The notes beneath the pieces were generated by a model that was not told the origin of the DNA, did not search any database, and saw only the letters and a program-made list of their open reading frames with translations. The translations under genes were made by a program, and so were the position numbers. From positions 1 to 56,056 of the forward strand of contig CDRNVI010000081.1 in NCBI GenBank assembly GCA_977017575.1: 56,056 nucleotides of DNA, in the 5' to 3' direction. This document shows, one piece after another, positions 13,080 to 52,053 of the stretch. Numbering within the stretch: position 1 is the stretch's first letter; each line of letters opens with the position of its first letter. The DNA is from Paramoeba atlantica. Lineage: Eukaryota > Protista > Discosea.

Positions 13080-13586
13080 TTAATTCTTCTTCTGCACCAG
13101 CTTTTCAATGAGTGCGTTACCCTTCTTACGGAATTGTGCTGCCTCAACTGAAAGTGCCTTGCGTTGAGCGGCTGACAACTTCTGGTATTTGGCAGATACT
13201 TTCTTTGCCGCCGCGCGGAAACAAGCTTTAGTATTCTTGTGGTTTCCCTTCTCCGCCTTGTATATCAATGGTAAGGTACGCTTTAAGAACAAGCCATAAG
13301 GACGGTAGCGTGCGCTTTTCACTTGTGAGACGAGCGCTTTCTTCTGTTTCATATTCTCAGCAGCAATCTTGCTGAGGGACTGAACTTGAGCAGGAGGCAA
13401 CCTTTTAAAAGCGGCATGTGCTCCGGTGAGTTTTTTTGGGCCACCCTTTTTACCTTTGAAAAATTTTGACATAAATACACGCAGCGCACTTGTCGGTGCC
13501 GATTTTCCAGCTCGTAGCTTCTTGATAACTTCACGACGAAGCTTTACGATGTTATTCGCGAGGTTTGGTAGCGCACGAGAAAACAT
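13080..13586 (-). CDS. Basic twin-HMG-box protein with putative mitochondrial presequence (KAP/TFAM-like), copy 1, 168 aa
   Basis: Lys/Ala-rich. Two HMG-like boxes (APTSALRVFMSK...FKRLPPAQ; RPYGLFLKR...YQKLSAAQRKAL) and an N-terminal MFSRALP. Confidence 0.72.
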   Translation of the reverse strand: MFSRALPNLANNIVKLRREVIKKLRAGKSAPTSALRVFMSKFFKGKKGGPKKLTGAHAAFKRLPPAQVQSLSKIAAENMKQKKALVSQVKSARYRPYGLFLKRTLPLIYKAEKGNHKNTKACFRAAAKKVSAKYQKLSAAQRKALSVEAAQFRKKGNALIEKLVQKKN

Positions 13587-13752: not shown

Positions 13753-14352
13753 CTAATATTATTAAGTTTTTAATTATTGGCGAAGCTATGCATCTTTTAA
13801 TTAAAAAATTAATATTTTTTGTGTCAATAATTTTTGTGGAAATTTGTACATATCGACAAACAATAGAAGTTGTTAGTAGAGGGGCGGAAAAACCCAAAAT
13901 TAGGTCAAAAGTTTTTATTTGCTCTCAAAAAGATTCAAGAATTTTTACGGGGAAGAAAGTTGTTTTTCACCAAAAAATTATTAGACCTAGGAGGTACAAT
14001 AGGTGTTCCTAGGTAAATTAACCCGGACGGTGGTTTGCATCTCTCTAATCTTGTCAAATGCGTTGCGAAGGGCAGGTTATTAAATGGTCATTAAGTGAGG
14101 GGATGCGGGTGTGATCTCGCATGATCTTCCGACCGGGTGTTGACATAAAGCCAATCTCGATCCTCCTGCGTCAAATCTACTCATAAAATTTGAGTTTTTG
14201 TGCAAAATCTATGCCACTCTTCTCTAAAAAGTGGTTGCCAAGATCAGACCTCATGAGAAATTCAAAAATTGACCACAAAGATAAAAGAAATGTTTCTCGC
14301 CAAAAATTGACAACTTTTAAATAGAAAAACAATAAATTTTGTACCATGAATT
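13753..14352. repeat. Left arm of a ~600-bp inverted repeat (right arm split: 16614-16881 + 19427-19742)
   Basis: 14090-14352 is the inverted complement of 16614-16881, and 13753-14095 is the inverted complement of 19427-19742. Confidence 0.88.
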
Positions 14353-15755: not shown

Positions 15756-16259
15756 CTACTTTCGTTGTTCCACCAGCTTTTCAATGAGTGCGTTACCCTT
15801 GTTACGGACCTGTGCTGCCTCAACTGAAAGTTCTTTGCGTTGAGCGGCTGACAACTTCTGGTATTTGGCAGATACTTTCTTTGCCACCGCGCGGAAACAA
15901 GCTTTAGTATTCTTGTGGTTGCCCTTCTCTGCCTTGTATATCGCCGGCATGACACGTCGCACGAACAAACTATAAGGGCGACATTTAGCACTTTGAACTT
16001 GCGCTTTCAGTGACTGTTTTCGCTTCATATTCTCGGCAGCAATCCTGCTGAAGGATTGCACTTGAACAGGAGATAACTTTTTAAAAGAGGCATGTACTAC
16101 GGCGAGATCTTGAGATCCTTTTTTACCTTTGAGAAACTTTGACATAAATACACGCAGTGCACTTGTCGGGGCTGATTTTCCAGCCCATGGCTTATTGATA
16201 ACTTTATGACGAAGCTTTGCGATGTTCTTGGTGAGGTTTGGAAGCGCACGAGAAAACAT
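15756..16259 (-). CDS. Twin-HMG-box KAP/TFAM-like protein, copy 2, 167 aa
   Basis: Full-length paralogue of 13080-13586 with an intact ORF. Confidence 0.72.
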   Translation of the reverse strand: MFSRALPNLTKNIAKLRHKVINKPWAGKSAPTSALRVFMSKFLKGKKGSQDLAVVHASFKKLSPVQVQSFSRIAAENMKRKQSLKAQVQSAKCRPYSLFVRRVMPAIYKAEKGNHKNTKACFRAVAKKVSAKYQKLSAAQRKELSVEAAQVRNKGNALIEKLVEQRK

Positions 16260-16613: not shown

Positions 16614-16881
16614 AATTCATGGCACAATTGTTTTTTAAATAAAAGTTAAATTTTTGGCTGGAAACATTTTTTTAATTTTTTTTTGTCAATTTTTGAATTT
16701 CTCATGAGGTCTGATCTTGGCAACCACTTTCTAGAGAAGAGTGCCACAGATTTTTGTACAAAAACTTAAATATCATGACAGGATTTGACGAAGGGAGAGC
16801 AAGAGGCTTTTCTTCAACACCCGGTCGTGGGATCATGCGAGATGATCTTGCATCTCACATCACACCCGCAGCCCCTCACTT
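16614..16881. repeat. Right arm (inner part) of the long inverted repeat
   Basis: Inverted complement of 14090-14352, interrupted at ACTT by the IS5-like element. Confidence 0.85.
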
Positions 16882-17111
16882 GAGGGGCTGCGGGTACTTC
16901 GACCGAGACCGCACCGAGACCGCGGTTCGTATTTTCGGTGGGGAGAGATAGAAAAACAGCCAAAAGTTTACATTTGTTTTTATTTTTAAGTGGAATTTCG
17001 AATTCGGTGTACGCTTCTAGCTATATTTTCCTTTGTTTCTTTCTCTGAATCATTTTCATCCTTTTTACTAACAACGGCGCGTTTTTCTTTTCCCGTAAAC
17101 TTTTCTCCTAA

Positions 17112-17762
17112 ATGTTTATGAATATCGAGAGCAATGACGCATTGCAAGAACGATTGACTGCTCTTGAGCCTGAGACAAGTGCCGAACACAAACTCTTCGA
17201 TGTCATCAAGGCTTCGACGATCCGGGTCTTTACGAAGAGGCCCGACGTTTTCTCCAAGCCACGTTTGGAGATAAGCAATGCAGAGCTCAGTAGTAAAGTG
17301 GATGAAATCGCAGGGCGCGTGTCACGCACGATGGACAACTTCCTACCTGTTGCACGCTCTGTGTGTGGCATTGACTTGACCTCGTGCATCGTGACTCGCG
17401 CCCTGTTCCACTTGGTTGACCGCCGGGGCCATCTGCATCTGAGCGTCCGCCCCCGGAGCGCGTACTTCCTTGGAGAGGCAGCTGCCGACCTTGAAGCGTA
17501 CCTTCAAGAAGACCCCCTCTTTTCCCCCCATCGCCAAGGTGAAGTGGGCGACTTTGTGGACAGCGTGTGGCGCTCTGTTTCCGGGAAGCGGTCTCGCGTT
17601 TGCCAGCAGTGGCGTCAGCGCAAGCGGACCGCTTCTCGTCAAAATGAATCAAGCAGCGGGGCTGAGGTCTCGCCACCACCCCCAGAATACAATCCTCCCT
17701 CGTATTCGGTGGCCAGCCAGATCGCTACTTCGGATCGTTCGGTTCGTTTCCCGGCCTTATAG
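17112..17762 (+). CDS. Accessory protein of the IS5-like element, no recognisable domain, 216 aa
   Basis: Lies inside the TIRs. Homologous to 25264-25938 (shared RSVCGID, VDRRGHL, EVGDFVDSxWRSVSGxRSR, PSYxxAxxIxTSDRxVxFPxL). Confidence 0.85.
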   Translation: MFMNIESNDALQERLTALEPETSAEHKLFDVIKASTIRVFTKRPDVFSKPRLEISNAELSSKVDEIAGRVSRTMDNFLPVARSVCGIDLTSCIVTRALFHLVDRRGHLHLSVRPRSAYFLGEAAADLEAYLQEDPLFSPHRQGEVGDFVDSVWRSVSGKRSRVCQQWRQRKRTASRQNESSSGAEVSPPPPEYNPPSYSVASQIATSDRSVRFPAL

Positions 17763-18052
17763 GTGTGCTCCACATGAGACGAGAAAGTACGAAGGTAAGA
17801 CGGTAATAAGGTCTTACGAAGGTAAGACGGTAATAAGATGGTAAAGAAGGTAATAAGGCAAGTTAAGGTAAGGCAATTTCGTTCCCACTACTGTTCTGTT
17901 CGATTTTCCCTAATTACTAGCTCATTCCACTAATTGTTATTTCATTCCACTAATTACAAGTACATGCTAAAATATTTCCGCCCAATAATAATACAACCCT
18001 ACTTATTTTGCCTATAAATCGAAATTTCTTTCAATCGTTTCATTCTCTCTCT

Positions 18053-19042
18053 ATGTTTGGCATCTCGACAGCACAGGTGCGGGAGTTCTACAACGAGCTC
18101 CGAAGTGTGCATGGATCCGATGTTACGGAGACTGATTACCGTCGTGTTCAGTCATCATTGTGCATCTGTTCTCTGAATTGCACATGGGAACAGTTGTACG
18201 ATGTCCAAAGGGCGTGGCTCTCACCGGATGCCCCGTTGATTTCAATTCGGACTCTCCGGGATGATTCTACTCGTGTGGCGCAGCTGTGCCGTTCACCCCT
18301 GCTCATGAACCCTGAGCTACGGTTTACCCAGGGAGTATCATGGTTATCTGACGTAACCTGCATGCTGGACGTCACGACGATCCCATGTCGTGCAAGAAAA
18401 CCGAGAGAAACACCTGATGAAACCACCCGAGATAGCACCTATTCGGGAAAGCACCGGCAACACTGCTTCAAGGTGGAAGTTTGGCTAACACTGGCCGGAG
18501 TTCCATTTTTCTTTCGCGGCCCAGTTGTTGGCAGCATGCATGATGCCAAAATTTATAAGAGTACTAGTGTGCACCGCACTCTGCTGTTCACTCACCACAA
18601 AGATGAAATGTTCTTGGCCGATCTAGGGTACATAGGTTGTGCGCACTGCCTTGTACCCTATAAGAAAACTGGCCGTGGTCTCACCGATGATGAAAAACGT
18701 GTGAATGAAAGGATTTCACTGATTCGCTCTCGAATTGAGCGACGTTTTGCACATTTCGACAAGTTTCGTTTTCTTCATGGTACTGATCATGATATACCAT
18801 GGGTCAGAGACGCTTTTCAAATTGTTTCTGTAGTTACGTATGGACTGCTGGCTACTCAGCCGCAGTATGATTTCGATTCGATTATAAATTTAAGTTTGAA
18901 ATCTACAAGTGATGAAGGTGAGTGTTTATGTAGTAAAGGGTGCGGTGTAGTTGATGGTATCGAAAGCCGCAGAGAGTGGCTTAAGGAAAACATAGATGGC
19001 GTTGCCTGTGAGCCTAAAAAATCAAATAAGTGTGCTAAGTAA
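18053..19042 (+). CDS. DDE transposase, IS5/PIF-Harbinger type (DDE_Tnp_4-like), 329 aa from the first ATG
   Basis: Motifs MLDVTTIP (D1), YSGKHRQHCFKV, GSMHDAKI, LADLGY (D2), PYKK and NERISLIRSRIERRF (E). Confidence 0.9.
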   Translation: MFGISTAQVREFYNELRSVHGSDVTETDYRRVQSSLCICSLNCTWEQLYDVQRAWLSPDAPLISIRTLRDDSTRVAQLCRSPLLMNPELRFTQGVSWLSDVTCMLDVTTIPCRARKPRETPDETTRDSTYSGKHRQHCFKVEVWLTLAGVPFFFRGPVVGSMHDAKIYKSTSVHRTLLFTHHKDEMFLADLGYIGCAHCLVPYKKTGRGLTDDEKRVNERISLIRSRIERRFAHFDKFRFLHGTDHDIPWVRDAFQIVSVVTYGLLATQPQYDFDSIINLSLKSTSDEGECLCSKGCGVVDGIESRREWLKENIDGVACEPKKSNKCAK

Positions 19043-19426
19043 TTTTATTTACTTATGGGCGGGGGTAGGCTTCCGGTGGACCTAGGGGGTGTACACCAAA
19101 AAGAAAAATATTTACGTTCAAGGCTCGTGATAAATTTGTAGTTATAAATGAGTGTATCAGGGTTACCCCTTTCTTTGGTAAAATCACGCGTATATTCCTT
19201 TTAGTAGATTTGTTACTAACCGTACAGATTTGTTAATAACCGTAAATTTCATCGAGATTTCCTCTCCAACAATGTCCGGATTCATGTAGCCTCGCCTTCG
19301 CCTTCTACGCCCCTGCCCCCACCCCCCACCCATTCCACACTTTCTGTTCTTGCACTCAGATAAGTGCGTACGCCGCACCGAGACTGCGTCGAGACCGCAC
19401 CGAATCCCCACCCGCAGCCCCTCACT

Positions 19427-19742
19427 TAATGACCACTTATTGTCCTGCCATTCGCAACGCATTTGACAAGATTAGAGAGATGTAATTATTTTTCTTCTTG
19501 TCTACCACGATTTCAAATCTAATTTTTTGGTGAAAAGCTACTTTGCTCCCCGTAAAAAATCTTGAATCTTTTTGGGGGCAAAAAAACCCTTTTGACCTAC
19601 TTTTTGGTTTCTTCCGCCTCTCTACCAAGAACTTCTATTAGTCGATATGTACAAATTTCTAGAAAATTTACTGTAACAAAAATTATTGATTGTTCAATTA
19701 AAAGTTGCAGAGCTTCGCCAATAATTAAAAGCTCAATAATAT
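19427..19742. repeat. Right arm (outer part) of the long inverted repeat
   Basis: Inverted complement of 13753-14095. Confidence 0.85.
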
Positions 19743-25035: not shown

Positions 25036-26184
25036 GAGGGGCTGCGGGTGACGTTAACCGCGGTCTCGCACGGTCTCGGCGCGGTCTCATATTTGTAAAA
25101 TGGGCTAGAGGGTAAAAACACGACTTGCGGATTAGGTAAAATGGTATTTGAGGTGAACACTAAACATCCGCTTTGACACACTTAAAACCATCACGAATAA
25201 TAAGCAGAACTTAAAATATGATCTTCTCTCTTTCTCCTTCAACTTTTCCTGAACGCGTCCTTTTTAGTTCAGCCGCGGGAACGAGACTACACGGTCTGAT
25301 GTTCTTATTTCTTTCGCCGTATAATAGGACGGCGTGGGGACATTCTTCTCCTGATCTGCAGCCGTGGGACAAGCTTCTGGGGTCTGAGATGCTGGCTTCT
25401 GAGATGCTTCATCCGCCCCTCGTTTGAGCCGGCGACGATGCCGGTAGGTCACGCAGGCACGAGAACGCCTCCCGGATACAGAGCGCCACAAACTATCCAC
25501 GAAGTCTCCTACTTCGTTGTCCCGTCGAGGTGCATACATCGGGCTGAGTTCCAGGAAGCTTTGGAGATCCTGGGCAGCTTCTCCAACAAAGTAAACGGCG
25601 TGCGACGGAACATCCATAAGCAGATGCCCGCGGCGATCTACGATGTGAAGAATGGCGCGCTCCAGTATCTGTGGCGTAATGTCTATGCCACAAACGGAAC
25701 GGCCCCCGTGAAGGAAACTATCCATGGTGCGATGAATGCGTTCCAGGATTTCTTCGACTTTTGCTCCTAGCTCTTCTTCTGTGATAATCAGCTTCGGAGG
25801 GGTAAATACGTTAACACGTTTCGTGAAGACCCTCTTGGTTGAAGCTAAAACAACCTCATAAATCGCCTTTTCACTTTCAACCTCCGAGGGGTTCGCAATT
25901 CGAGCTTTTAGGTCAGCATTACTCTCAATTCCAGTCATTGACAAGACAAAAAGATACGGAAAGCGAAATAACAAACTAAAGATGTTCAAAAATAGTCTTA
26001 CTTCTATCTTCATCAAGGCCTACAATATGAGTACTCCATACACATCGTATATACGAAGTGAAAATTCTTTTTTATTCAAATTATGCTCTACTCTCCATCC
26101 AAAAACTAGCATTTTTTTGTCTCTCCAAGCCAAAAGCAAACCGCGGTCTCGCGCGGTCTCGTGTGCCACGACCCGCAGCCCCTC
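25036..26184 (-). mobile_element. Non-autonomous member of the IS5-like family carrying only the accessory gene, 1149 bp
   Basis: Same TIRs GAGGGGCTGCGGGT / ACCCGCAGCCCCTC, direct flanks ATGT (25032-25035, 26185-26188) and GCGGTCTC subterminal repeats. Confidence 0.9.
25264..25938 (-). CDS. Accessory protein homologue (224 aa from MTGIES)
   Basis: Intact ORF, colinear with 17112-17762. Confidence 0.85.
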   Translation of the reverse strand: MTGIESNADLKARIANPSEVESEKAIYEVVLASTKRVFTKRVNVFTPPKLIITEEELGAKVEEILERIHRTMDSFLHGGRSVCGIDITPQILERAILHIVDRRGHLLMDVPSHAVYFVGEAAQDLQSFLELSPMYAPRRDNEVGDFVDSLWRSVSGRRSRACVTYRHRRRLKRGADEASQKPASQTPEACPTAADQEKNVPTPSYYTAKEIRTSDRVVSFPRLN

Positions 26185-26561
26185 ATGTATGTTGACCCGT
26201 AAAACAGCAAAAAAAAGAGCCTTGGAAAATATGAACTTTGGAAAAAACAGTAAAATGGAGGAAAAAGCGAATCTAAAAGTTGTATAGTACCCTGAGTGTC
26301 CTCCACCATTTGTAGTACTTTTTTGGGTCTGTTTGGAACTGAATAATTGAGTTCATAACTATTTTTATAACTTTTTGAGGGCATCTTTTTAAGGCCTTAA
26401 TGCTTTTTATATAGCCTCTATAAGGCATTTGTGGTTGTTATAATGTTTTTTATCTCAGGAGAGAACTAGAGAACTAGGAAGAAAAAAGAAACAAAGATAT
26501 TTGCTAGGGGAACGAGATCTATCAAACACAATGGAGAGTCTGTAATTAGTATCTGTAGATA

Positions 26562-28842: not shown

Positions 28843-29346
28843 TTACTTTCTTTGTTCCACCAGCTTTTCAATGAGTGCGTTACCCTTCTTACGGAATTGT
28901 GCTGCCTCAACTGAAAGTGCCTTGCGTTGAGCGGCTGACAACTTCTGGTATTTGGCAGATACTTTCTTTGCCGCAACTCGGAATAGCACCTTTCGATCTT
29001 TGCAGTTTTTCTTTTCCGCATTGTATATCGCTGGCATGTTACGCTGCACGAACAAACTATAAGGATGACATTTAGCACTTTGAACTTGAGCTTTCAGTGA
29101 ATGTTTTCGCTTCATATTCTCGGCAGCAATCTTACTGTAGGACTGGACCTGAGCTGGAGATAACTTTTTAAAAGCGGCATGTGCTCCGGCGAGATCTGAG
29201 AATCCCTTTTTACCTTTGAAAAACTTTGACATAAATACACGCAGTGCACTTGTCGGGGCTGATTTTCCAGCCCATGGCTTATTGATAACTTTACGACGAA
29301 GCTTTGCGATGTTCTTGGCGAGGTTTGGAAGCGCACGAGAAAACAT
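28843..29346 (-). CDS. Twin-HMG-box KAP/TFAM-like protein, copy 3, 167 aa
   Basis: Starts MFSRALP at 29346 and is intact. Shares its immediate 3' flank with copy 2. Confidence 0.72.
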   Translation of the reverse strand: MFSRALPNLAKNIAKLRRKVINKPWAGKSAPTSALRVFMSKFFKGKKGFSDLAGAHAAFKKLSPAQVQSYSKIAAENMKRKHSLKAQVQSAKCHPYSLFVQRNMPAIYNAEKKNCKDRKVLFRVAAKKVSAKYQKLSAAQRKALSVEAAQFRKKGNALIEKLVEQRK

Positions 29347-29535
29347 TAGAGATAGAAAGACAGGGAGCAAGCTAAATAACCCAGTATAGCGTAGAATACC
29401 ATTATCCGGAGGGATTGAACGAATAATACACACTTTTTTTTTGTGATTTCTTGAGTGACTTGTATGAAATGTTAACATTATTTGTTCGTTTTTCTAGAAA
29501 AAAATGACTAGCACTACCTTTTCTCTGGCTCTTGA

Positions 29536-30761: not shown

Positions 30762-31864
30762 CTGTACCCCCCTAGTTATCTGTCACAACTTTTCGTGGAA
30801 AGGTGACAAATAAGTAGGGGGGTAAATTTCGTTTTAAGATTTTTTTGGAAAACAATAGCTATGAAAGTGACAGATAACTAGGGGGAGTAATTGCGATGGT
30901 TGTAAAACTACCGCTCTACACTCGATTATTGAAAAAAAAGTGAACAAAAACAGTGAAAATATAAAGAGGAACACAGTAATATAATAGAAGAAAAAAATAT
31001 AAAAGGGGGCTCCGGTGGTCCAAAACAGAAAAAATTTTTTGAAAAAAATGGGGGGTCCATGGGGGGGGTCCAGGGGGGGGGGCATGGTCGAGCAAATTTT
31101 TTCGAAAAAATTAGTTTTCGAAAAAAAACCGCAGAAAGGGTAGCCGGGGTCTTGGCGCGCATTTTCCACCCCCCTACCCGGGGGTGACCCCCCCGCGTAT
31201 CCGCAGGACGGGTCCGCCAAGTTCGGATTTTTTCGGAAAAATTTTTTTGAAAAAAATTTCAACTTAGCTAAAAAAATGACAAAAAAAATATTTTTCCAAA
31301 ATCGTTTCCCCTATTGTATTTTGATAGTTTGGGACCTACACTAGCTTTCTACGCAGTTGTTTTCGCAAGGTATCACTTCTTCGAACTGTGGTGCGCCCCC
31401 CAAAATGACCCATTTTTGACTAAAAAAGGTGAAAAAGTATTTTTCGGACCTAAAGGGGCATTTTTGTGTCGAAAGAATGGTATGGTTGGAGTCGCATTCT
31501 CTACCCAATACGTTCGGTAGGCTTTCATTCATGCCTGCGAGTGATTTCCCACGCGCAAATGTCGGATTTAGTGCTCTGAGAGCAAAAATACGCGAAAATC
31601 ACCCCATTTCTACCCGAAATTCGGCTATTTTTGGCTATAATCTTTCCGTTTTCCAGGCTAAATTTTCTTTTTTAGGCTCTTCGTTAAACGCGGCGGTAGT
31701 TTTCAACGCGAAGCGCGCAGCATGAGTGACTTCTAAGTTGAAAGCAACCACCGCGTTTAACGAAGAGCCTAAAAAAGAAAATTGACGAAAAAAAATTGAA
31801 GGACCGAAAAGTGGCAGATAACTAGGGGGGTGACGTGTGAGAGATAACTAGGGAGGAGGTACAG
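30762..31864. mobile_element. CTGTACCCCCC-ended MITE (nested level 3)
   Basis: TA|CTGTACCCCCCTAGTTATCTGTCAC ... GATAACTAGGGAGGAGGTACAG|TA. Confidence 0.8.
30890..31782 (-). mobile_element. Single full unit of the 0.9-kb repeat inserted as a discrete element (nested level 4)
   Basis: Near-identical reverse complement of one array unit, from the palindrome to ACCATCGCAAT, with AATT at both junctions. Confidence 0.9.
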
Positions 31865-36904: not shown

Positions 36905-39144
36905 TTAGCGGACACCCGCCTTCCTCCACTCTTTTACCGCGGAGGATAGTATCGCGGCGTTGCCTTTTTGAACAGCCACATTAATGGCTTGTAGTGCATG
37001 ACGCAGGAAACCTTTCCTGTCATACGTATACCTTGCGATCTCCTTTAGGAGGAGTACAGTGCGCTTCCCTGCCACACCAAAAACGGTAAATGCAAGGGGG
37101 TAGAAATGCATACCCCTTTTCGTGGCCATGTCACTGTGCGCTTTTACTTTCAAGCTTTCCACCCTTTCTAGAGTGTTGCCAGGCGCTACCCATTCGGCCT
37201 TAACATAAGAAGGGGCGAGGGGGTTAACAACGGTCACGTCCACCAGACATATCTTCCCTCCCAGCATAAAGCAGACGTCGGGGCCCTGACCAGCAGAGAA
37301 TCGGGGTTCATGATTGTCAGGAGTGAATCCGTACTGTCGTAGCAAGTGCACGAAGGCATTCTTAACAAGTTTGTGGCGAGTGGCCGCAGTGTCGCCTTTG
37401 ACTTTATTGCAGTCAAGGGCGTGCACAACAAAATCTTTGTTTGAGAGGATGTCTCCGCACTCACATTGTGCGAAAGGGTCCGAAGTAGGTGCTATCAAGT
37501 ATCGCATGCGCATGGCTGTTTGCCATTCTGCGTCGCGCATGAAGTACTCACCCCGATTCCTACGCGCCTCTGTCCAATTGCGCGTTCTCTTGTCTATCAA
37601 CTGAAGTGAATGGACGTCATGTAGTTCGCTGGTTTCTTTACGCACTGCTGACTTCGACTCTTCATATCTTGTCAAGGCAGAACGTCGTCTTTCCATACAC
37701 CCTAATACCTCAGCTTTTGTGCGAGAATACAGAGTTGCCGCTTGCTGCGCAAAAGGTTTCGCCCCCAAAAGGTCGCCCGTCATGAGAGTACTGTGAAACG
37801 GGTTCTTTTCCAGGTCTTCGAAGCCTCCTAGCAGCTCTGAGGCACACTCCTGTATGGCCTTGTCCGCTAACACGTTGGCTTTTGCCGTTACCTCCGGCTG
37901 ATGACACCGCATTAGGTAGTCCCACCGGGGGACTCCACATCTCTTCAGCAAAATGTAAGCACTTTGTAACGAGAGATGTTGCAGCCGATCCAGGAATGTC
38001 TGCAATTTAGGCATTTGGTTGACTACCCATCTGGTTTCATCCGCGCCTTCCTTGGAGACGAATGCACCTAGGAGCTTTTGTCCTTGCTCCGCATGCTCTA
38101 TGTTCATAGAGCTCTGAAAGGAGCGTACTGGTCATTGAAATGCGTCGAAAGCTTACATTTGGCCGGATGTACCTCCAGTCCTATTCCCGAAGCGTGATCA
38201 CAGAGAGCGCCAAACGCCTGTGCGACACGTTCTGCCGGGCCGATGATTGAAAGGTCGTCTAGGTAACCCCAAAGCGTCAGATCACTGAACTCATCCTTCA
38301 ATTTTCCAAGAATTTGGTGCAAGCCGAGAGAAAACAGTAACGGTCCTAATGGGTCGCCTTGTCGGACTCCCCTCAGAACCTTAGTCGGCGAACACGAGGA
38401 GTTAAATATCGTAGTTGGAGCCCCATATACATACATGTATGAGGTCACCCCGTATAGCTCGTGAAATTCATCATTTCCCCTTAGATACTGAAACACCGCG
38501 CTTCTTTCAATTGAATTGAAGGCGTTACGGATGTCTACTGTCAAGAGCACAAAGTCCGCTTTTTGACGAAACGCGTTTCTTGCCCTTAATATTATTTTAG
38601 GTCCTCCGTTTCTTGTTCCAACACCAAATTGTGTATCTTGGAAAAGTCTGCCCGTTGCTTCTGCTACCCTGTCCATGGCGATTTGGCTAGCCAATTTAAG
38701 AAAGATTTCCCCCATTGCTATAGGTCGGCAGGCTGGGGATCCTTCTACGGAAGGGCCCTCCTTGCGCAGCAAGATCAGAGTGGAGCTGGTTAAGACGTCC
38801 CTTAGCTGAGCGTCTCGGGAGTTTCGCAGCACTGCTGTAGCTATCCAAGTAACGCAGGCCACGATATCCTGGTCCTCTAGGAGCGGTATAAGAAGTTCGC
38901 GTGTCCAGCCTGATGGGCCCGGCGCGGATCCTTTGGCGAGCTTTCTAGCCCTGTCAGTTAAGGTTTGCTTTTCGATGTCCATAGATTTTGCCGGCAAATG
39001 TTTATAACCCCGAAAGGCCTTTGGGTGAAGTCGATCTATGGCCTTAGCGATCTCTTCAGTAGATAGTGGTTGTCGTTCCTTCGCCTCTAGCGCTTTTGCC
39101 GCTTTCCCGATCGAAACGTTGTATTTATACAATACAAAAAACAC
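36905..39144 (-). mobile_element. 5'-truncated CRE/SLACS-like non-LTR retrotransposon (RT + CCHC + restriction-like endonuclease), one frameshift at ~38105
   Basis: RT motifs GSAPGPSG, RPIAMGE, VDIRNAFNSI, GVRQGDPLGPLLF, YLDD, GLEVHPAKC and KLLGAF, followed by CECG...HALDC, RHKLV, PD...DVTV and ESLK (REL nuclease). Confidence 0.92.
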
Positions 39145-43490: not shown

Positions 43491-43994
43491 TTACTTTCGT
43501 TGTTCCACCAGTGTTTCAATGAATGCGTTGCCCTTCTTGCGAAGTTGTGCTGCCTCATCTGAAAGAGCTTTGCGTTCAGCGGGTGGTAGATTCCTGTATT
43601 TGGCAGATACTTTCTTTACCGCCGCGCGGAAACAATCCTTAGGATTCTTGTGATTTCCCCTCTCCGCTTTGTATGTCGCTGACATGGTACGCTTTAAGAA
43701 CAAGTTATAAGGTCCGTAGTGTGCGCTTTTCATTTGTGCTTTCAGCGCTTTCTTCCGTTTCATATTCTCAGCAGCAATATTACTCAAGGACTGGACTTGA
43801 GCTGGAGTTAATTTTTTAAAAGCGGCATGAAGTCCGGCGAGATCTGGGTATCCCTTTGTACCTTTGCAAGATTTTGACATAAATACACGCAGCGCACTTG
43901 TCGGAGCTGATTTTCCAGCCCACGGATTATTGATAACTTTACGACGAAGCTTTGCGATGTTCTTGGTGAGGTTTGGAAGCACACGAGTAAACAT
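43491..43994 (-). CDS. Twin-HMG-box KAP/TFAM-like protein, copy 4, 167 aa
   Basis: Starts MFTRVLP at 43994; intact paralogue. Confidence 0.72.
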   Translation of the reverse strand: MFTRVLPNLTKNIAKLRRKVINNPWAGKSAPTSALRVFMSKSCKGTKGYPDLAGLHAAFKKLTPAQVQSLSNIAAENMKRKKALKAQMKSAHYGPYNLFLKRTMSATYKAERGNHKNPKDCFRAAVKKVSAKYRNLPPAERKALSDEAAQLRKKGNAFIETLVEQRK

Positions 43995-45270
43995 TGGAGG
44001 TATAAAGGTAAACGCTGTATTCAACAAATAGGATTCTTTTGCCGTTAAACATAACGTTTCCTTTAGCGCTATTCCATTTGCTTATTCTTTTTATTGTCTC
44101 AAAATTGTTTTTATTTCTTCGATTAAAGGGGCATAGTTTTGTACCAAATAATAGTTTTTCAATGAAATTTCTCCCCTACAAGTAGAAAAAAGTTCTCAAA
44201 CTTACAAAAACATTTTGGCTAGGACCTTCGATGAATCTTCATCAAAAGTTGTACACTTTCGTTGAAGCACATTGAAAGTTGTACACTTTCGATGAATCTT
44301 CATCGAAGGTGTTTTTGATTTTTTTTTGACATTTTAAAATTTTTGATTTCGACCGAATTCTTCAATTAGCTGTTGAAAACGCGTTACGTGAAACATGTAA
44401 TTCTAATAGTCTACGTTTTGAAATTTAGCCGAGGGGCTGTTATGATTTGTGTTCTAAACCCTGTTCCGGGTTATTGTGCCCCCCCTGCACAATAACTGGC
44501 TCTAGGCACAATAACTAAATATATGAAAAAGCCAAAAAAGGGTAACATAACAAACCAAATCTGCTTTTGGGCTTAATTGGGTTTGGGCGTAATTAAGTTT
44601 AGACCGGTAATTAAAATGTACGTTTTTTAATTAACGTAGCAATAATTAACGTAATAATTGATTTTTGTCAAAAAAAGGTGAAAAATAATTATTTTTTTTA
44701 CACTATATTACAATTTTAAAACAAGCAATCAAGTTAGCAATTTCACTTTTTGTATCCCAAAACTAGCAATTCAACCTCCCTTGAGTTATTTGTGATTCTA
44801 ATAATAATAACAATAATGATAAAAAGGAAGCAATCCAGGTCCAATCCATTCACGCGTTCCGGACCGTGTCTTTCGACCTCTCCACGGCCTGACTTGGGAA
44901 CCCTTCCCTTGTTATATGGGAAAGTTTATGTGGGAGGTTTTTTTTCCCTAAACCCCATCGCCCAGCTAGCCTCGTACAACCCCGTTCCAGTGGTTTTGGG
45001 ACTATCCCCACATTCATGTACATGAGAGAAATGGGTAAAGAATGACGCATTCGTGCAGATCTAGTTGAGGGCAACACGGGAAAAATACTTGTAAACAAAA
45101 CGAATATAGAATAGAACACTGAAAAATACTTTGAAAAGTCAAATTTCCCATTAAAAAGTGAAATTTTCGGAGGAAAATTTTAACAGTTGTCTGAAATATT
45201 CTTACCCGATGACCATTATTTAGATACCCCCATTATTTTTGGCGCTAGAGGGCATAAATAGTAAATCATA

Positions 45271-47000
45271 CTAATATCGAATCTTGTGCCCATTGGCAGC
45301 AATACACACTTCTAGCCGTTTTTCGAACGTGCTGTGTAACTTCTTGGCCGTCACCCTGCCTTCAAGAGAGAGAAAATAACTTTGCGACACTCTTTTTATC
45401 TCCTCAGAAGTCCGAGGAAAGGTCTGGTTCTTTGCGTGTCGAATTCTTGCCCAAAAGTTCTCTATAGAATTCAAATCCGGGGAGTCTGCAGGCCATCTGA
45501 AAGGATTTTTGTCCCCTGAGTAGGGCATGTACCGCAAACATTGTGCGCAATGTCCGGAAGAGACATGCGTGTTCCACCACAGCTGAGTCTTCTCACTCGT
45601 GTGTGGAGAAGCCCCGTCATCCATGTAAACGGCGGTGGAGTTCAACTCACAGTATCGAGTCCACTCCGTATCGAGGATTTCGCGACGATAGTGTAGACTC
45701 CCCAATTTCAACTGATCAGGAAGCGTTTCGCGCTTTTCTCCAGGGCGCAGGGGGCGGCTTAGCTCGTTCGCATAGAAAGTAGAGAAATTGTCGCACCAGT
45801 GAAAGATAAAGGTTCCCTCTTTATCGATACCTCCCCATATCATGACCTTAATGGGATGGAAATCTCGGTTGCGCGCAACTCGATCATAATGACTCTGCCA
45901 AGTAGACGTGGAAGAATCCCCTTCACAGATAAACGTTTCATCAGTAAAAACAAGGCTCTCAAAAAACTGTCCTTCCGTTCGTTCATTTTCCTGAAGCATC
46001 GCCTTACAAAAATTTACGCGGGCCTCCCGCTTCCGAGCACTGAGATGCAGTGTGCGTTTCTTTGACCCATATGAGTAATCATAGTAGTAATGCAACGCAC
46101 GCATTCGATGACGTGAAACTTGGATGGATCCCTCGCTTAAGTTTACCATAGCCCTACGTAGGTAATTGAGGGATCGGTGTACCGGATGCTTGGCCATAAC
46201 GCTGGCAAAAAGATCCTTGGCCTCTTCGGCGCTACTCCATCCCGATAGAGTTCGACGAACTTTCTCAACTTTTTGCACGCGCAGCGTAACAATTATGGAC
46301 TGGCCGTCAATTTTTCTAATCAAGCGACTACATGTTTGCTTGGGCAAAGTAAACATGTAGCAAAGATCCGCTTGACAGAACAAACCTGTTTGATATAAAC
46401 CTTTTAAAAGAAACAACCCAGACTCAGTTAAACTGCCAGGCTGTTTGAAAAGAACAGTTAAGTGGCGTTTTCGTTGATTTTTCTTTTTCGTCGGACGACC
46501 CCTTTTCTTTCCTACGTTTGGCCCTTTTTTCTCAAGCAGTGACGCGCTACGGACCTCAGTTAATAAATGAAGTGTTTTTTGCCTCTCGTTTGATAAATTA
46601 GTGAAACGTGTTTTCAAATCCTGACACTCTGCGCGAGCTTTGCATTATCCTGCTTTAAAATTTGCACTTTTTGTTCCATTTCTGTTCTCCGCGTTTCGGC
46701 CTCCATGAAGTCCTCCGCACTCTTAGCTCCACGCTTCTCAAGAGTCCTAACCTTTCTTTTGGTCTTGCAGAGTTTATTACGCAGCCTCTTGATAATTGCA
46801 TCCTTGGCATTGATTTTTTTCTCCAAGGACTTCAATTGTTCGTCACTTGGATCTGAAATTAACTGTGTAAGAGGTGCTTCCTTTTCAGGGGACAAAGCGT
46901 CAAGGCTGGTGTCGTCATCAGCTCCGCGCGATACATCGGAGTGCAGACCCTTTATTTCCCCTACCGCTTCTAGAAGCTTTGCGTCTAACCCAGGCGACAA
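45271..47000 (-). pseudogene. Tc1/IS630-like transposase (DD51E) with an upstream coiled-coil ORF overlapping by 4 nt, probably one frameshifted gene
   Basis: Motifs VFTDET, KVMIWGGI, YMDDGASPH and WPADSPDLNSIENFW. The HTH segment GSLTESGLFLLK resembles GGLTDSGKVLLK at 9.0 kb. The 448-aa ORF has no ATG before the HTH. Confidence 0.87.
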
Positions 47001-47582: not shown

Positions 47583-48500
47583 ACTTTTTTATTCTCTTCG
47601 TTAAACGCGGTGGTTGTTTTCAACTTAGAAGTCACTCATGCTGCGCGCTTCGCGTTGAAAACTACCACCGCGTTTAACGAAGAGACTAAAAAAGAAAATT
47701 TAGCCTGGAAAGCTGAAGAAAGCGGAAAGATTATAGCCAAAAATAGCCGATTTTCGGGTAAAAAAGGGGTCATTTTTGCGTATTTTTGCTCTCAGAGCAC
47801 TAAATCCGATATTTGCGTGTGAGAAATCACTCTTAGGCGTGAATGAAAGCCTACTGAACGTATTGGGTAGAGAATGCGACTCAAACCACACCATTCTTTG
47901 GCATAAAAAGACCCCTTGAGGTCCGAAAATTACTTTTTCACATTTTTTTAGTCAAAAAAGGGTCTTTTTGAGGGGCGCACCACGGCTCGAAGAATGGATA
48001 TCTTGCGAAAACAACGGTGTGGACAGCTAGTATAGGGCACAAACTATAAAAATACAATAGGGCAAAGGATTTTGGAAATTTTTTTTTTTTGCCATTTTTT
48101 CCGCCAAGTTGAAATTTTAAAAAAAAAAAAATCCGAAAAAATCCGAACTTGGCGGACCCGTCCTGCGGATACGCGGGGGGGTCACCCCCGGGTAGGGGGG
48201 TGGAAAATGCGCGCCAAGACCCCGGATACCCCTCTGCGGTTTTTGTTCGAAAAATATTTTTTACGAAAAAAATTGCTCGACCATGACCCCCCCTGGACTC
48301 CCCATTTTTTTCAATTTTTTTTTCAGTTTTGGACCCCTTTTATATTTTTTTCTTCTATTATAAATTCTTTTTTTTATGATAAATTCTTGTATTACTGTGT
48401 TCCTCTTTATACACTGTATACACTGTATTTCTTTATACACTGTATTTTCACTGTTTTTGTTCACTTTTTTTCAATAATCGAGGGTACAGGGGTAGTTGTA
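47583..48500 (+). repeat. Diverged full-length copy of the 0.9-kb element
   Basis: Palindrome at ~47590-47700 and a colinear body to ~48490. Confidence 0.88.
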
Positions 48501-51549: not shown

Positions 51550-52053
51550 TTATTTCTTCTTCTCTACTAGCTTTTCAATGAATGCCTTGCCCTTCTTACG
51601 GACCTGTGCTGCCTCAACTGAAAGTGCTTTGCGTTGAGCGGCTGACAACTTCTGGTATTTGGCAGATACTTTCTTTGCCGCCGCGCGGAAACAAGCTTTA
51701 GGATTCTTGTGGTTTCCCTTCTCCGCCTTGTATATCGCTGGCATGTTACGTTTCAGGAACAAGCTATAAGGAAGGTAGCGTGCGCTTTTCACTTGTGATA
51801 CGAGCGCTTTCTTCTGTTTCAGATTCTCGGCAGCAATCTTATTCAAGGACTGGACTTGAGCTGGAGATAATTTTTTAAAAGCGGCATTTGCTCCAGCGAG
51901 ATCTGGGGCTCCCTTTTTACCTTTGAGAAGCTTTGAGATAAATACATGCCGCGCACTTGTCGGGGCTGATTTTCCAGCCCATGGCTTATTGATAACTTTA
52001 CGACGAAGCTTTTCGATGTTCTTGGTGAGATTTGGAAGCGCACGAGAAAACAT
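51550..52053 (-). CDS. Twin-HMG-box KAP/TFAM-like protein, copy 5, 167 aa
   Basis: Intact paralogue starting MFSRALP. Confidence 0.72.
   Translation of the reverse strand: MFSRALPNLTKNIEKLRRKVINKPWAGKSAPTSARHVFISKLLKGKKGAPDLAGANAAFKKLSPAQVQSLNKIAAENLKQKKALVSQVKSARYLPYSLFLKRNMPAIYKAEKGNHKNPKACFRAAAKKVSAKYQKLSAAQRKALSVEAAQVRKKGKAFIEKLVEKKK

Follow-up and report, generated by a model that had tools for sequence, protein, structure and literature searches.

A two-gene DNA transposon of the PIF/Harbinger-ISL2EU-Spy superfamily with 4-bp ANNT flanks and a predicted all-helical accessory protein in a Paramoeba atlantica contig

We analysed a stretch of 56,056 bp, hereafter the window, which comprises positions 1 to 56,056 of contig CDRNVI010000081.1 in the Paramoeba atlantica assembly GCA_977017575.1. 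At 16882-19423, on the plus strand, it holds an intact two-gene DNA transposon of 2,542 bp, here called element 1; a shorter and diverged relative, element 2, lies further downstream. The features of both elements are listed below (ORF, open reading frame; TIR, terminal inverted repeat).

16878-16881: left target-site duplication, ACTT
16882-16895, plus strand: left TIR, GAGGGGCTGCGGGT
16902-16923, plus strand: left subterminal direct repeats, two copies of ACCGAGACCGC with an 11-bp period
17112-17762, plus strand: ORF1, accessory (candidate helper) protein of 216 aa, open, upstream of the transposase
17788-17858, plus strand: intergenic short tandem repeats, two copies of TACGAAGGTAAGACGGTAATAAG plus partial copies
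18053 (ATG) to 19042 (stop), plus strand: ORF2, transposase of 329 aa with a DDE_Tnp_4 domain and a C-terminal CxCxKGCG common to its relatives
19366-19409, plus strand: right subterminal repeats, GAGACTGC and GAGACCGC, oriented as at the left end
19410-19423, minus strand: right TIR, reading ACCCGCAGCCCCTC on the plus strand
19424-19427: right target-site duplication, ACTT
25036-26184, minus strand: element 2, 1,149 bp, with the same 14-bp TIR, GAGACCGC subterminal repeats and the flanks ATGT/ATGT

The TIRs of element 1, 14 bp each, form a perfect inverted match. An initial annotation, made from the sequence alone, had placed the element at 16882-19422; its start was right, whereas the right TIR runs one base further, to 19423. 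Both ORFs are open, the TIRs are perfect and the catalytic triad is kept, in agreement with the earlier description of an intact IS5/PIF-Harbinger-like element with two genes, and element 1 is probably mobile still. The gene order had to be corrected, the accessory gene being located upstream of the transposase, i.e. first and not second. In the window, GAGACCGC is present in nine copies against 0.84 expected. These copies are grouped at both ends of both elements and oriented like ORF1; just inside each end of element 1 they are spaced by 11 bp and lie on one strand at both ends. Their placement in the two elements bears out the proposal that subterminal repeats share one orientation at both ends and with the accessory gene.

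The coding content of element 2 is limited to a homologue of ORF1 (25264-25938, minus strand, 48% identical), without transposase. All four motifs said to be conserved in it, RSVCGID, VDRRGHL, EVGDFVDSxWRSVSG and TSDRxVxFP, were found. Several other copies have likewise kept ORF1 and lost the transposase. Throughout the 45.7-Mb genome the 14-bp TIR occurs 310 times, compared to 0 occurrences of reversed-pattern controls. The family of element 1 includes five full-length copies of 95-98% identity, plus many deleted derivatives; one copy, on contig C62, resembles the other haplotype of the element 1 locus. The C62 allele of element 2 (L039:2402-2430, allelic to window 26171-26200) contains 8 extra nucleotides, AGGGGCTG, directly after CCCCTCATG; they complete a perfect palindrome of 20 nt, CAGCCCCTCATGAGGGGCTG, and are missing from the window copy. 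This insertion resembles a repair scar of hairpin type left at the end of a transposon. The genome also contains miniature elements of 56-88 bp, made of two 14-bp TIRs and a few subterminal units, with ANNT flanks:

C8:101487-101542 (locus L070): miniature element of 56 bp, derived from the element 1 family
C26:391049-391116 (locus L077): miniature element
C28:1063-1150 (locus L079): miniature element

Next, we consider the target-site duplication. Upon re-reading, both window insertions have direct 4-bp flanks of the form ANNT, ACTT in element 1 and ATGT in element 2, just as first described. The wider sample comprised 25 complete elements of several subfamilies, each read at its two ends, with C70 and C44 counted once as a single insertion seen on two haplotigs. 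Identical 4-bp flanks were present in 20 of the 25, and 17 of these 20 conform to ANNT. They read ACTT, ACTA, AAGA, AAAT and AAGT in a first group, ATGT in element 2 of the window, ATGT, ATAT, AGCT, ACAT, AGAT, ATCT, ACGT, ATAT, AATT (three times), AGGT and AAAT (twice) in a further group, and AACT in one more element. Three of the 25 elements have flank pairs with a single mismatch (ACAT/ATAT, ATCT/ATGT and ATGT/ATGC). Of 76 non-redundant ends, 67 have A at position -4 and 73 have T at position -1, with the two middle positions free; further out, 68 have a pyrimidine at -5 and 65 have A or T at -6. These counts define the preferred target as a weak palindrome, W-Y-A-N-N-T-R-W. The 4-bp ANNT form expected from the window thus holds across about 25 complete elements.

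The same flanks could be read with a geometry like that of ISL2EU: a true duplication of 2 bp (NN) within A|NN|T, an element ending in T...A, and a 4-bp repeat that is illusory. The initial annotation took such a 2-bp duplication, with a T/A-extended TIR, for an equivalent reading, and at ANNT sites the two are indeed indistinguishable. T at -1 (73/76 ends) varies slightly less than A at -4 (67/76), the description of ISL2EU follows precisely this A|AT|T scheme, and the ATGT/ATGC flanks of L070 are a perfect 2-bp duplication of TG. However, two independent full-length copies, flanked by ACTA/ACTA and AAGA/AAGA, have duplicated a fourth base other than T, and under the 2-bp geometry each would need a mutated terminal base equal to the base past the opposite end. 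Single mismatches at inner positions (ACAT/ATAT, ATCT/ATGT) occur too, so the L070 pair is readily accounted for by a point mutation. Because of these two pairs and these mismatches, a true 4-bp duplication is strongly favoured. Moreover, no YqaJ gene, the partner found in ISL2EU, is present, and we regard the 2-bp geometry as very improbable.

The history of the insertion can be traced thanks to a paralogous copy of the target.

13754-14333, minus strand: empty paralog of the insertion site, in inverted orientation, which matches the element 1 flanks at about 80% identity and has a single ACTT and a solo TIR-like sequence
16864-16877, minus strand: older resident solo TIR-like sequence, abutting the insertion site and located outside element 1

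ACTT is found once in the empty paralog, which is without the element, and twice at the filled site, making a 3-bp reading of the flanks impossible. Left of element 1 (window 16864-16895) there is a near-palindrome, ACCCGCAGCCCCTC-ACTT-GAGGGGCTGCGGGT. The empty paralog already holds ACCCGCATCCCCTC-ACTT (14096-14110), therefore element 1 landed beside a solo end older than itself and inserted into the exact ACTT adjoining it. The solo TIR-like sequence resembles the ends of small non-autonomous elements whose units are of the GAGATCACG type, and the tail-to-head junction formed here has a single occurrence genome-wide. Insertion here may mean that a favourable target was used again, or that the resident end attracted the element. 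We also asked whether the 19-bp direct repeat CACCCGCAGCCCCTCACTT (16863-16881 and 19409-19427) might be a long target-site duplication or an attachment (att) site. This was rejected because element 2 and about 25 other copies are devoid of such a repeat, the empty paralog has the sequence once, and the junction is unique in the genome.

The product of ORF2, which starts at an ATG common to its relatives, matches DDE_Tnp_4 (PF13359) with an E value of 5e-20 over residues 106-258. In the alignment with its relatives, D106, D190 and E229 are invariant, the catalytic D-D-E being therefore intact. NCBIfam gave weak matches only, to transpos_IS5_4 and IS5_3, and the nearest named relatives are Streptomyces transposases of IS5/IS1182 type. 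A word search with an alignment of the transposases, one Streptomyces protein included in the query, returned only the small eukaryotic clade to which ORF2 itself belongs and Streptomyces proteins, with no named eukaryotic relative; one relative of ORF2 comes from the EukProt set PhM_4. The N-terminal region aligns with the helix-turn-helix (HTH) region of a bacterial relative. Among subfamilies the transposases are about 60% identical, while the 14-bp TIR is identical in all of them. Judged by its DDE core, the element belongs to the IS5-related PIF/Harbinger-ISL2EU-Spy (PHIS) superfamily.

The accessory protein encoded by ORF1 is of special interest. Its predicted features include the basic helix RSRxCxxWRxRKR and a disordered tail, and RFPxL is conserved at the C-terminus. 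More than 120 matches to it were found in the genome, many of them open, and six subfamilies can be distinguished among them, with pairwise identities of 39-62%. Outside, relatives are scarce. A word-based search with ORF1 returned only four proteins, all near-identical, and the accessory profile found only 23 matches among 1.84 billion cluster representatives, all unnamed. Three of the 23 (P0032, P0035 and P0038) are distant, with 18-24% identity; the three accessory relatives whose origin was traced come from ENA or Logan assemblies. The ratio of nonsynonymous to synonymous substitutions (dN/dS) is about 1 among members of one subfamily, which is what copies that decay once inserted should show. 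When subfamilies are compared with each other, dN amounts to 0.3-0.5; dS could be estimated only for F1 versus E (1.6), giving a dN/dS of 0.32, the other pairs being saturated. The between-subfamily value fits long-term constraint on ORF1.

An AlphaFold model of ORF1, built on a wider alignment, shows seven helices along with two tiny hairpins between residues 8 and 180, the core spanning about 20-180. Searches for a known family gave nothing: there was no match in Pfam with 12 accessory members at E values up to 10, none among PDB sequences with the accessory profile at E values up to 10, and only noise in the VIA wide search with ORF1 (run twice). Foldseek comparison of the ORF1 models with PDB, also run twice, reached at best an E value of 0.1 and a template modelling (TM) score of 0.2, which is noise level. 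Every Atlas structure had a TM score below 0.4 to ORF1, and Atlas features (run twice) scored 0.86 or less, with no Atlas cluster matched. The statement that the accessory protein has no visible Myb/SANT/MADF or YqaJ domain thus agrees with the blanks in Pfam, PDB sequences, AlphaFold with Foldseek and VIA, and Atlas, and the protein models as none of these domains. The model is all-helical save for the two tiny hairpins, which is incompatible with the alpha/beta nuclease fold of YqaJ.

A more delicate case is that of a very diverged Myb/SANT/trihelix-type DNA binder, which would make the element an ordinary two-component system of Harbinger or Nuwa type. The last three helices of ORF1 hold W-x4-GKRSR-x-C-x2-WR, which is loosely Myb-like. 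Its tryptophan spacing nevertheless departs from the Myb consensus, the family and PDB sequence searches were blank even at the permissive E values given above, and all structural matches lie in the noise range for helical proteins, with no top match shared by the two models. We therefore find this relationship rather improbable. ORF1 rather represents a lineage-restricted family, all-helical in its models, which has kept its conserved motifs although its six subfamilies have diverged to 45-62% identity.

The subterminal units differ between these subfamilies in a regular manner:

accessory subfamilies F1 and B: subterminal unit GAGACCGC
accessory subfamilies C and D: subterminal unit GAAACCGC/Y
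accessory subfamily E: subterminal unit GAACCCGC
accessory subfamily G: subterminal unit GAAACAGCG

Each unit is fixed within its accessory subfamily; between most subfamilies the units differ, by 1-2 bases, while the TIR is invariant. Sister subfamilies B and D, 62% identical and with a supported pairing, differ in their unit. Further units, GAGATCACG and GAAACCTCG, are present in small non-autonomous families. This pattern is suggestive of a division of labour in which the transposase would read the TIR and the helper would read an address specific to the subfamily.

The same layout is found outside this genome. The gene of P0035 is located directly upstream of a DDE_Tnp_4 gene (322 aa) on a contig of 2.2 kb, whose two ends are AGAGGGCTGGAGT inverted repeats and whose GTTACGGA subterminal units are co-oriented at both ends. 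P0012, a metagenomic relative of the transposase (40% identical), comes from a locus, L061, with a two-gene layout like that of element 1, ends of GAGGGGG type, flanks of ANNT type (AACT/AATT) and TTTTGTCCAA units that keep a single orientation across the two ends. The upstream 219-aa ORF of L061 aligned with the accessory family in hhalign only in the RGH region and without significance (E value 0.08). Recurrence of the layout in these two contigs indicates that the architecture is a property of the clade, extending beyond this genome. Inside a subfamily-E element we also observed a very distant two-gene DDE_Tnp_4 element (L074:360-2540, contig C20). Its Cys-rich ORF of 159 aa weakly aligns with the accessory profile (hhalign E value 7e-4), the motif common to both reading EFLRNLWNLYEGKR and DFVDSVWRSVSGKR, respectively. 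A helper module may be common to several PHIS families of this genome.

In Harbinger elements, the helper binds short subterminal repeats and recruits the transposase; in the reconstructed Harbinger3_DR system the second protein reportedly acts as a helper. By analogy, we propose that the transposase would recognize and cut the invariant TIR and make a target cut with a 4-nt stagger, while the accessory protein would take the role of the Harbinger Myb-like protein. It would bind the 8-9-bp subterminal units, placed 11 bp (one helical turn) apart and co-oriented at both ends, thereby tagging the ends as those of its own subfamily and attracting the transposase, perhaps by way of the C-terminal RFPxL peptide. 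Its basic helix may serve as a DNA contact, a nuclear-import signal or both. Copies possessing ORF1 alone, such as element 2, would have been moved in trans. Binding of the GAGACCGC repeats by the helper, as suggested initially, is a reasonable candidate mechanism, and the comparison of units across subfamilies is suggestive of it.

Alternatively, ORF1 might be no helper of transposition at all, being instead a regulator (an inhibitor or a copy-number control) or a selfish passenger. This would explain why ORF1-only derivatives, such as element 2 and several other copies, are common, and it agrees with the presence in the transposase of a basic tail of its own and of an N-terminal region alignable with the bacterial HTH region. 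Yet ORF1 is fixed upstream of the transposase, on the same strand, in six subfamilies as well as in contigs of other samples, and its divergence parallels that of the subterminal repeat unit. For these reasons such a role seems improbable.

Taken together, we favour a PHIS element with a 4-bp target-site duplication, a transposase which cuts the TIR and an ORF1 helper which binds the subterminal units, and we assign this reading as a whole a probability of roughly 0.72. Four points weigh against it. Common descent confounds the correlation between unit and subfamily, and one unit is found in both F1 and B, although these are only 49% identical. The flank pair of L070 better fits a duplication of 2 bp. 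The AlphaFold model of ORF1 reaches only moderate confidence, with a predicted local distance difference test (pLDDT) value of 73.8 and a predicted TM score (pTM) of 0.61. Finally, because of the basic C-terminal tail of ORF2, a helper for nuclear import may be unneeded.

Several features of the genome bear on the nature of the host. CAGTTTCTGTACTTTGTTG has 11 copies in the genome, compared to 0 for controls. At L063:1483-1519 (contig C3) and L064:1483-1519 (contig C10), a sequence resembling a spliced leader, AACGATAAAGATACAGTTTCTGTACTTTGTTG, was found, CAGTTTCTGTACTTTGTTG being its 3' part; at both loci poly(A) precedes it and a 5' untranslated region with an ORF directly follows. Fusion of the leader-like sequence to a 5' untranslated region and an ORF at two loci indicates a spliced leader of kinetoplastid type. 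The loci themselves look like leader-capped retrocopies or 5' ends of retroelements. In element 1, pyrimidine tracts precede both ORF1 and ORF2 and would fit a function as trans-splicing acceptors. As for kinetoplastid DNA transposons, PMC8101967 describes dead Merlin relics as the only ones reported by 2021.

The window as a whole has low coding density and mixed repeat content, and an Rfam scan of it gave no match. Besides the two elements it contains:

36905-39144, minus strand: reverse-transcriptase element (RVT_1) with a downstream ORF of 400 aa, unrelated to element 1
45271-46617, minus strand: ORF of a DDE_3 (Tc1/mariner-type) transposase
1-2273, 30890-31782 and 47584-48303: tandem or dispersed repeats of about 950 bp
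13080-13586, 15756-16259, 28843-29478, 43491-44027 and 51550-52053: five copies of an ORF of about 167 aa

The copies of the last ORF show 82-90% nucleotide identity, are lysine-rich and have no Pfam match. They adjoin the repeat that received element 1. Judged by eye, the ORF looks like two HMG-box-like repeats.

It remains to place element 1 among known groups. Those of the PHIS superfamily are defined by their duplications: TWA in PIF/Harbinger, AT within A|AT|T in ISL2EU, none in Spy, ANT in Pangu, CWG in NuwaI and C|TNA|G in NuwaII (Han et al. 2015, PMC4482050). Pangu corresponds to Harbinger2 of Repbase, and relatives of Harbinger duplicate 0, 2 or 3 bp (Kojima 2025, PMC12730594). Element 1 has TIRs and a short duplication, which with its 4 bp contrasts with the 0/2/3-bp range of PMC12730594. 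The 4-bp ANNT class lies outside the duplication classes given in PMC4482050 and PMC12730594.

Like canonical PIF/Harbinger elements, element 1 couples a DDE_Tnp_4 transposase with a separate protein and has short subterminal repeats next to its TIRs. It differs from them in its duplication (4-bp ANNT, from about 25 elements and 76 ends, instead of 3-bp TWA), and from both them and Nuwa in the partner, which is Myb/SANT/MADF there while no such domain was detected here. With ISL2EU it shares two genes and a symmetric target with outer A and T (A|AT|T); in ISL2EU, however, the duplication is the 2-bp AT and the partner is a YqaJ-type nuclease, whereas here four bases are duplicated, the central two being free, and the partner is predicted to be all-helical. 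Spy inserts into AAA|TTT with no duplication, unlike the present elements, in which duplications are found. The bacterial IS5 family has a related DDE core, as the weak NCBIfam matches indicate, and a 4-bp duplication is typical of IS5 itself. Still, IS5 elements are bacterial, possess a single gene and use the target YTAR, in contrast to the ANNT target, separate helper gene and eukaryote-style subterminal arrays seen here.

Only tentatively would we speak of an undescribed PHIS lineage, in which 4-bp ANNT duplications are combined with orphan, structurally novel helpers that co-diverge with their address repeats under a single TIR, and which resides in a kinetoplastid lineage. If it exists, it would give the eukaryotic Harbinger/ISL2EU/Pangu superfamily, in which groups are defined by duplication, a fourth duplication class, of 4 bp. 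It would also provide a helper family without recognisable fold whose predicted targets can be named (six subfamilies, four or five units, one TIR), and hence a natural set of partly orthogonal transposon/helper pairs in which the choice of ends by two-component transposons becomes directly testable. Moreover, the DNA transposons of this kinetoplastid-type genome would be abundant and young, a lineage thriving in a group believed to be practically free of active DNA transposons.

The closest described group is Pangu, which has TIRs beginning with AG or GG, two ORFs, the second "without any known motifs", and a position close to bacterial IS5 (PMC4482050). Like element 1, it encodes an IS5-like DDE transposase along with a motif-less ORF, has a target with A and T at opposite ends and G-rich TIRs with AG/GG-like starts, and is compact (2.5-3.5 kb). 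Pangu differs in its 3-bp ANT duplication, as opposed to 4-bp ANNT, and its listed hosts exclude kinetoplastid-type protists, the host type read for element 1. Element 1 might even be a plain member of Pangu/Harbinger2, its helper being the motif-less second ORF of Pangu and the extra duplicated base a minor quirk of the lineage. The ANT duplications, TIR starts and ORF content documented in PMC4482050 agree with this, as does the proximity of Pangu to bacterial IS5, since the sole named relatives of the present transposase are bacterial IS5-type proteins. On the other hand, groups are defined by target-site duplication in PMC4482050 and about 25 elements show 4 bp, unreadable as 3 bp, and 1.84 billion representatives yielded just the 23 unnamed accessory relatives; plain membership therefore seems unlikely. 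The 4-bp ANNT duplication and the orphan helper speak for the new two-component group proposed in the initial annotation, but that claim was too strong, as Pangu, compared by description only, comes close. On the same comparison by description, the element is best filed as Pangu-like, and could be an offshoot of Pangu with a 4-bp target-site duplication.

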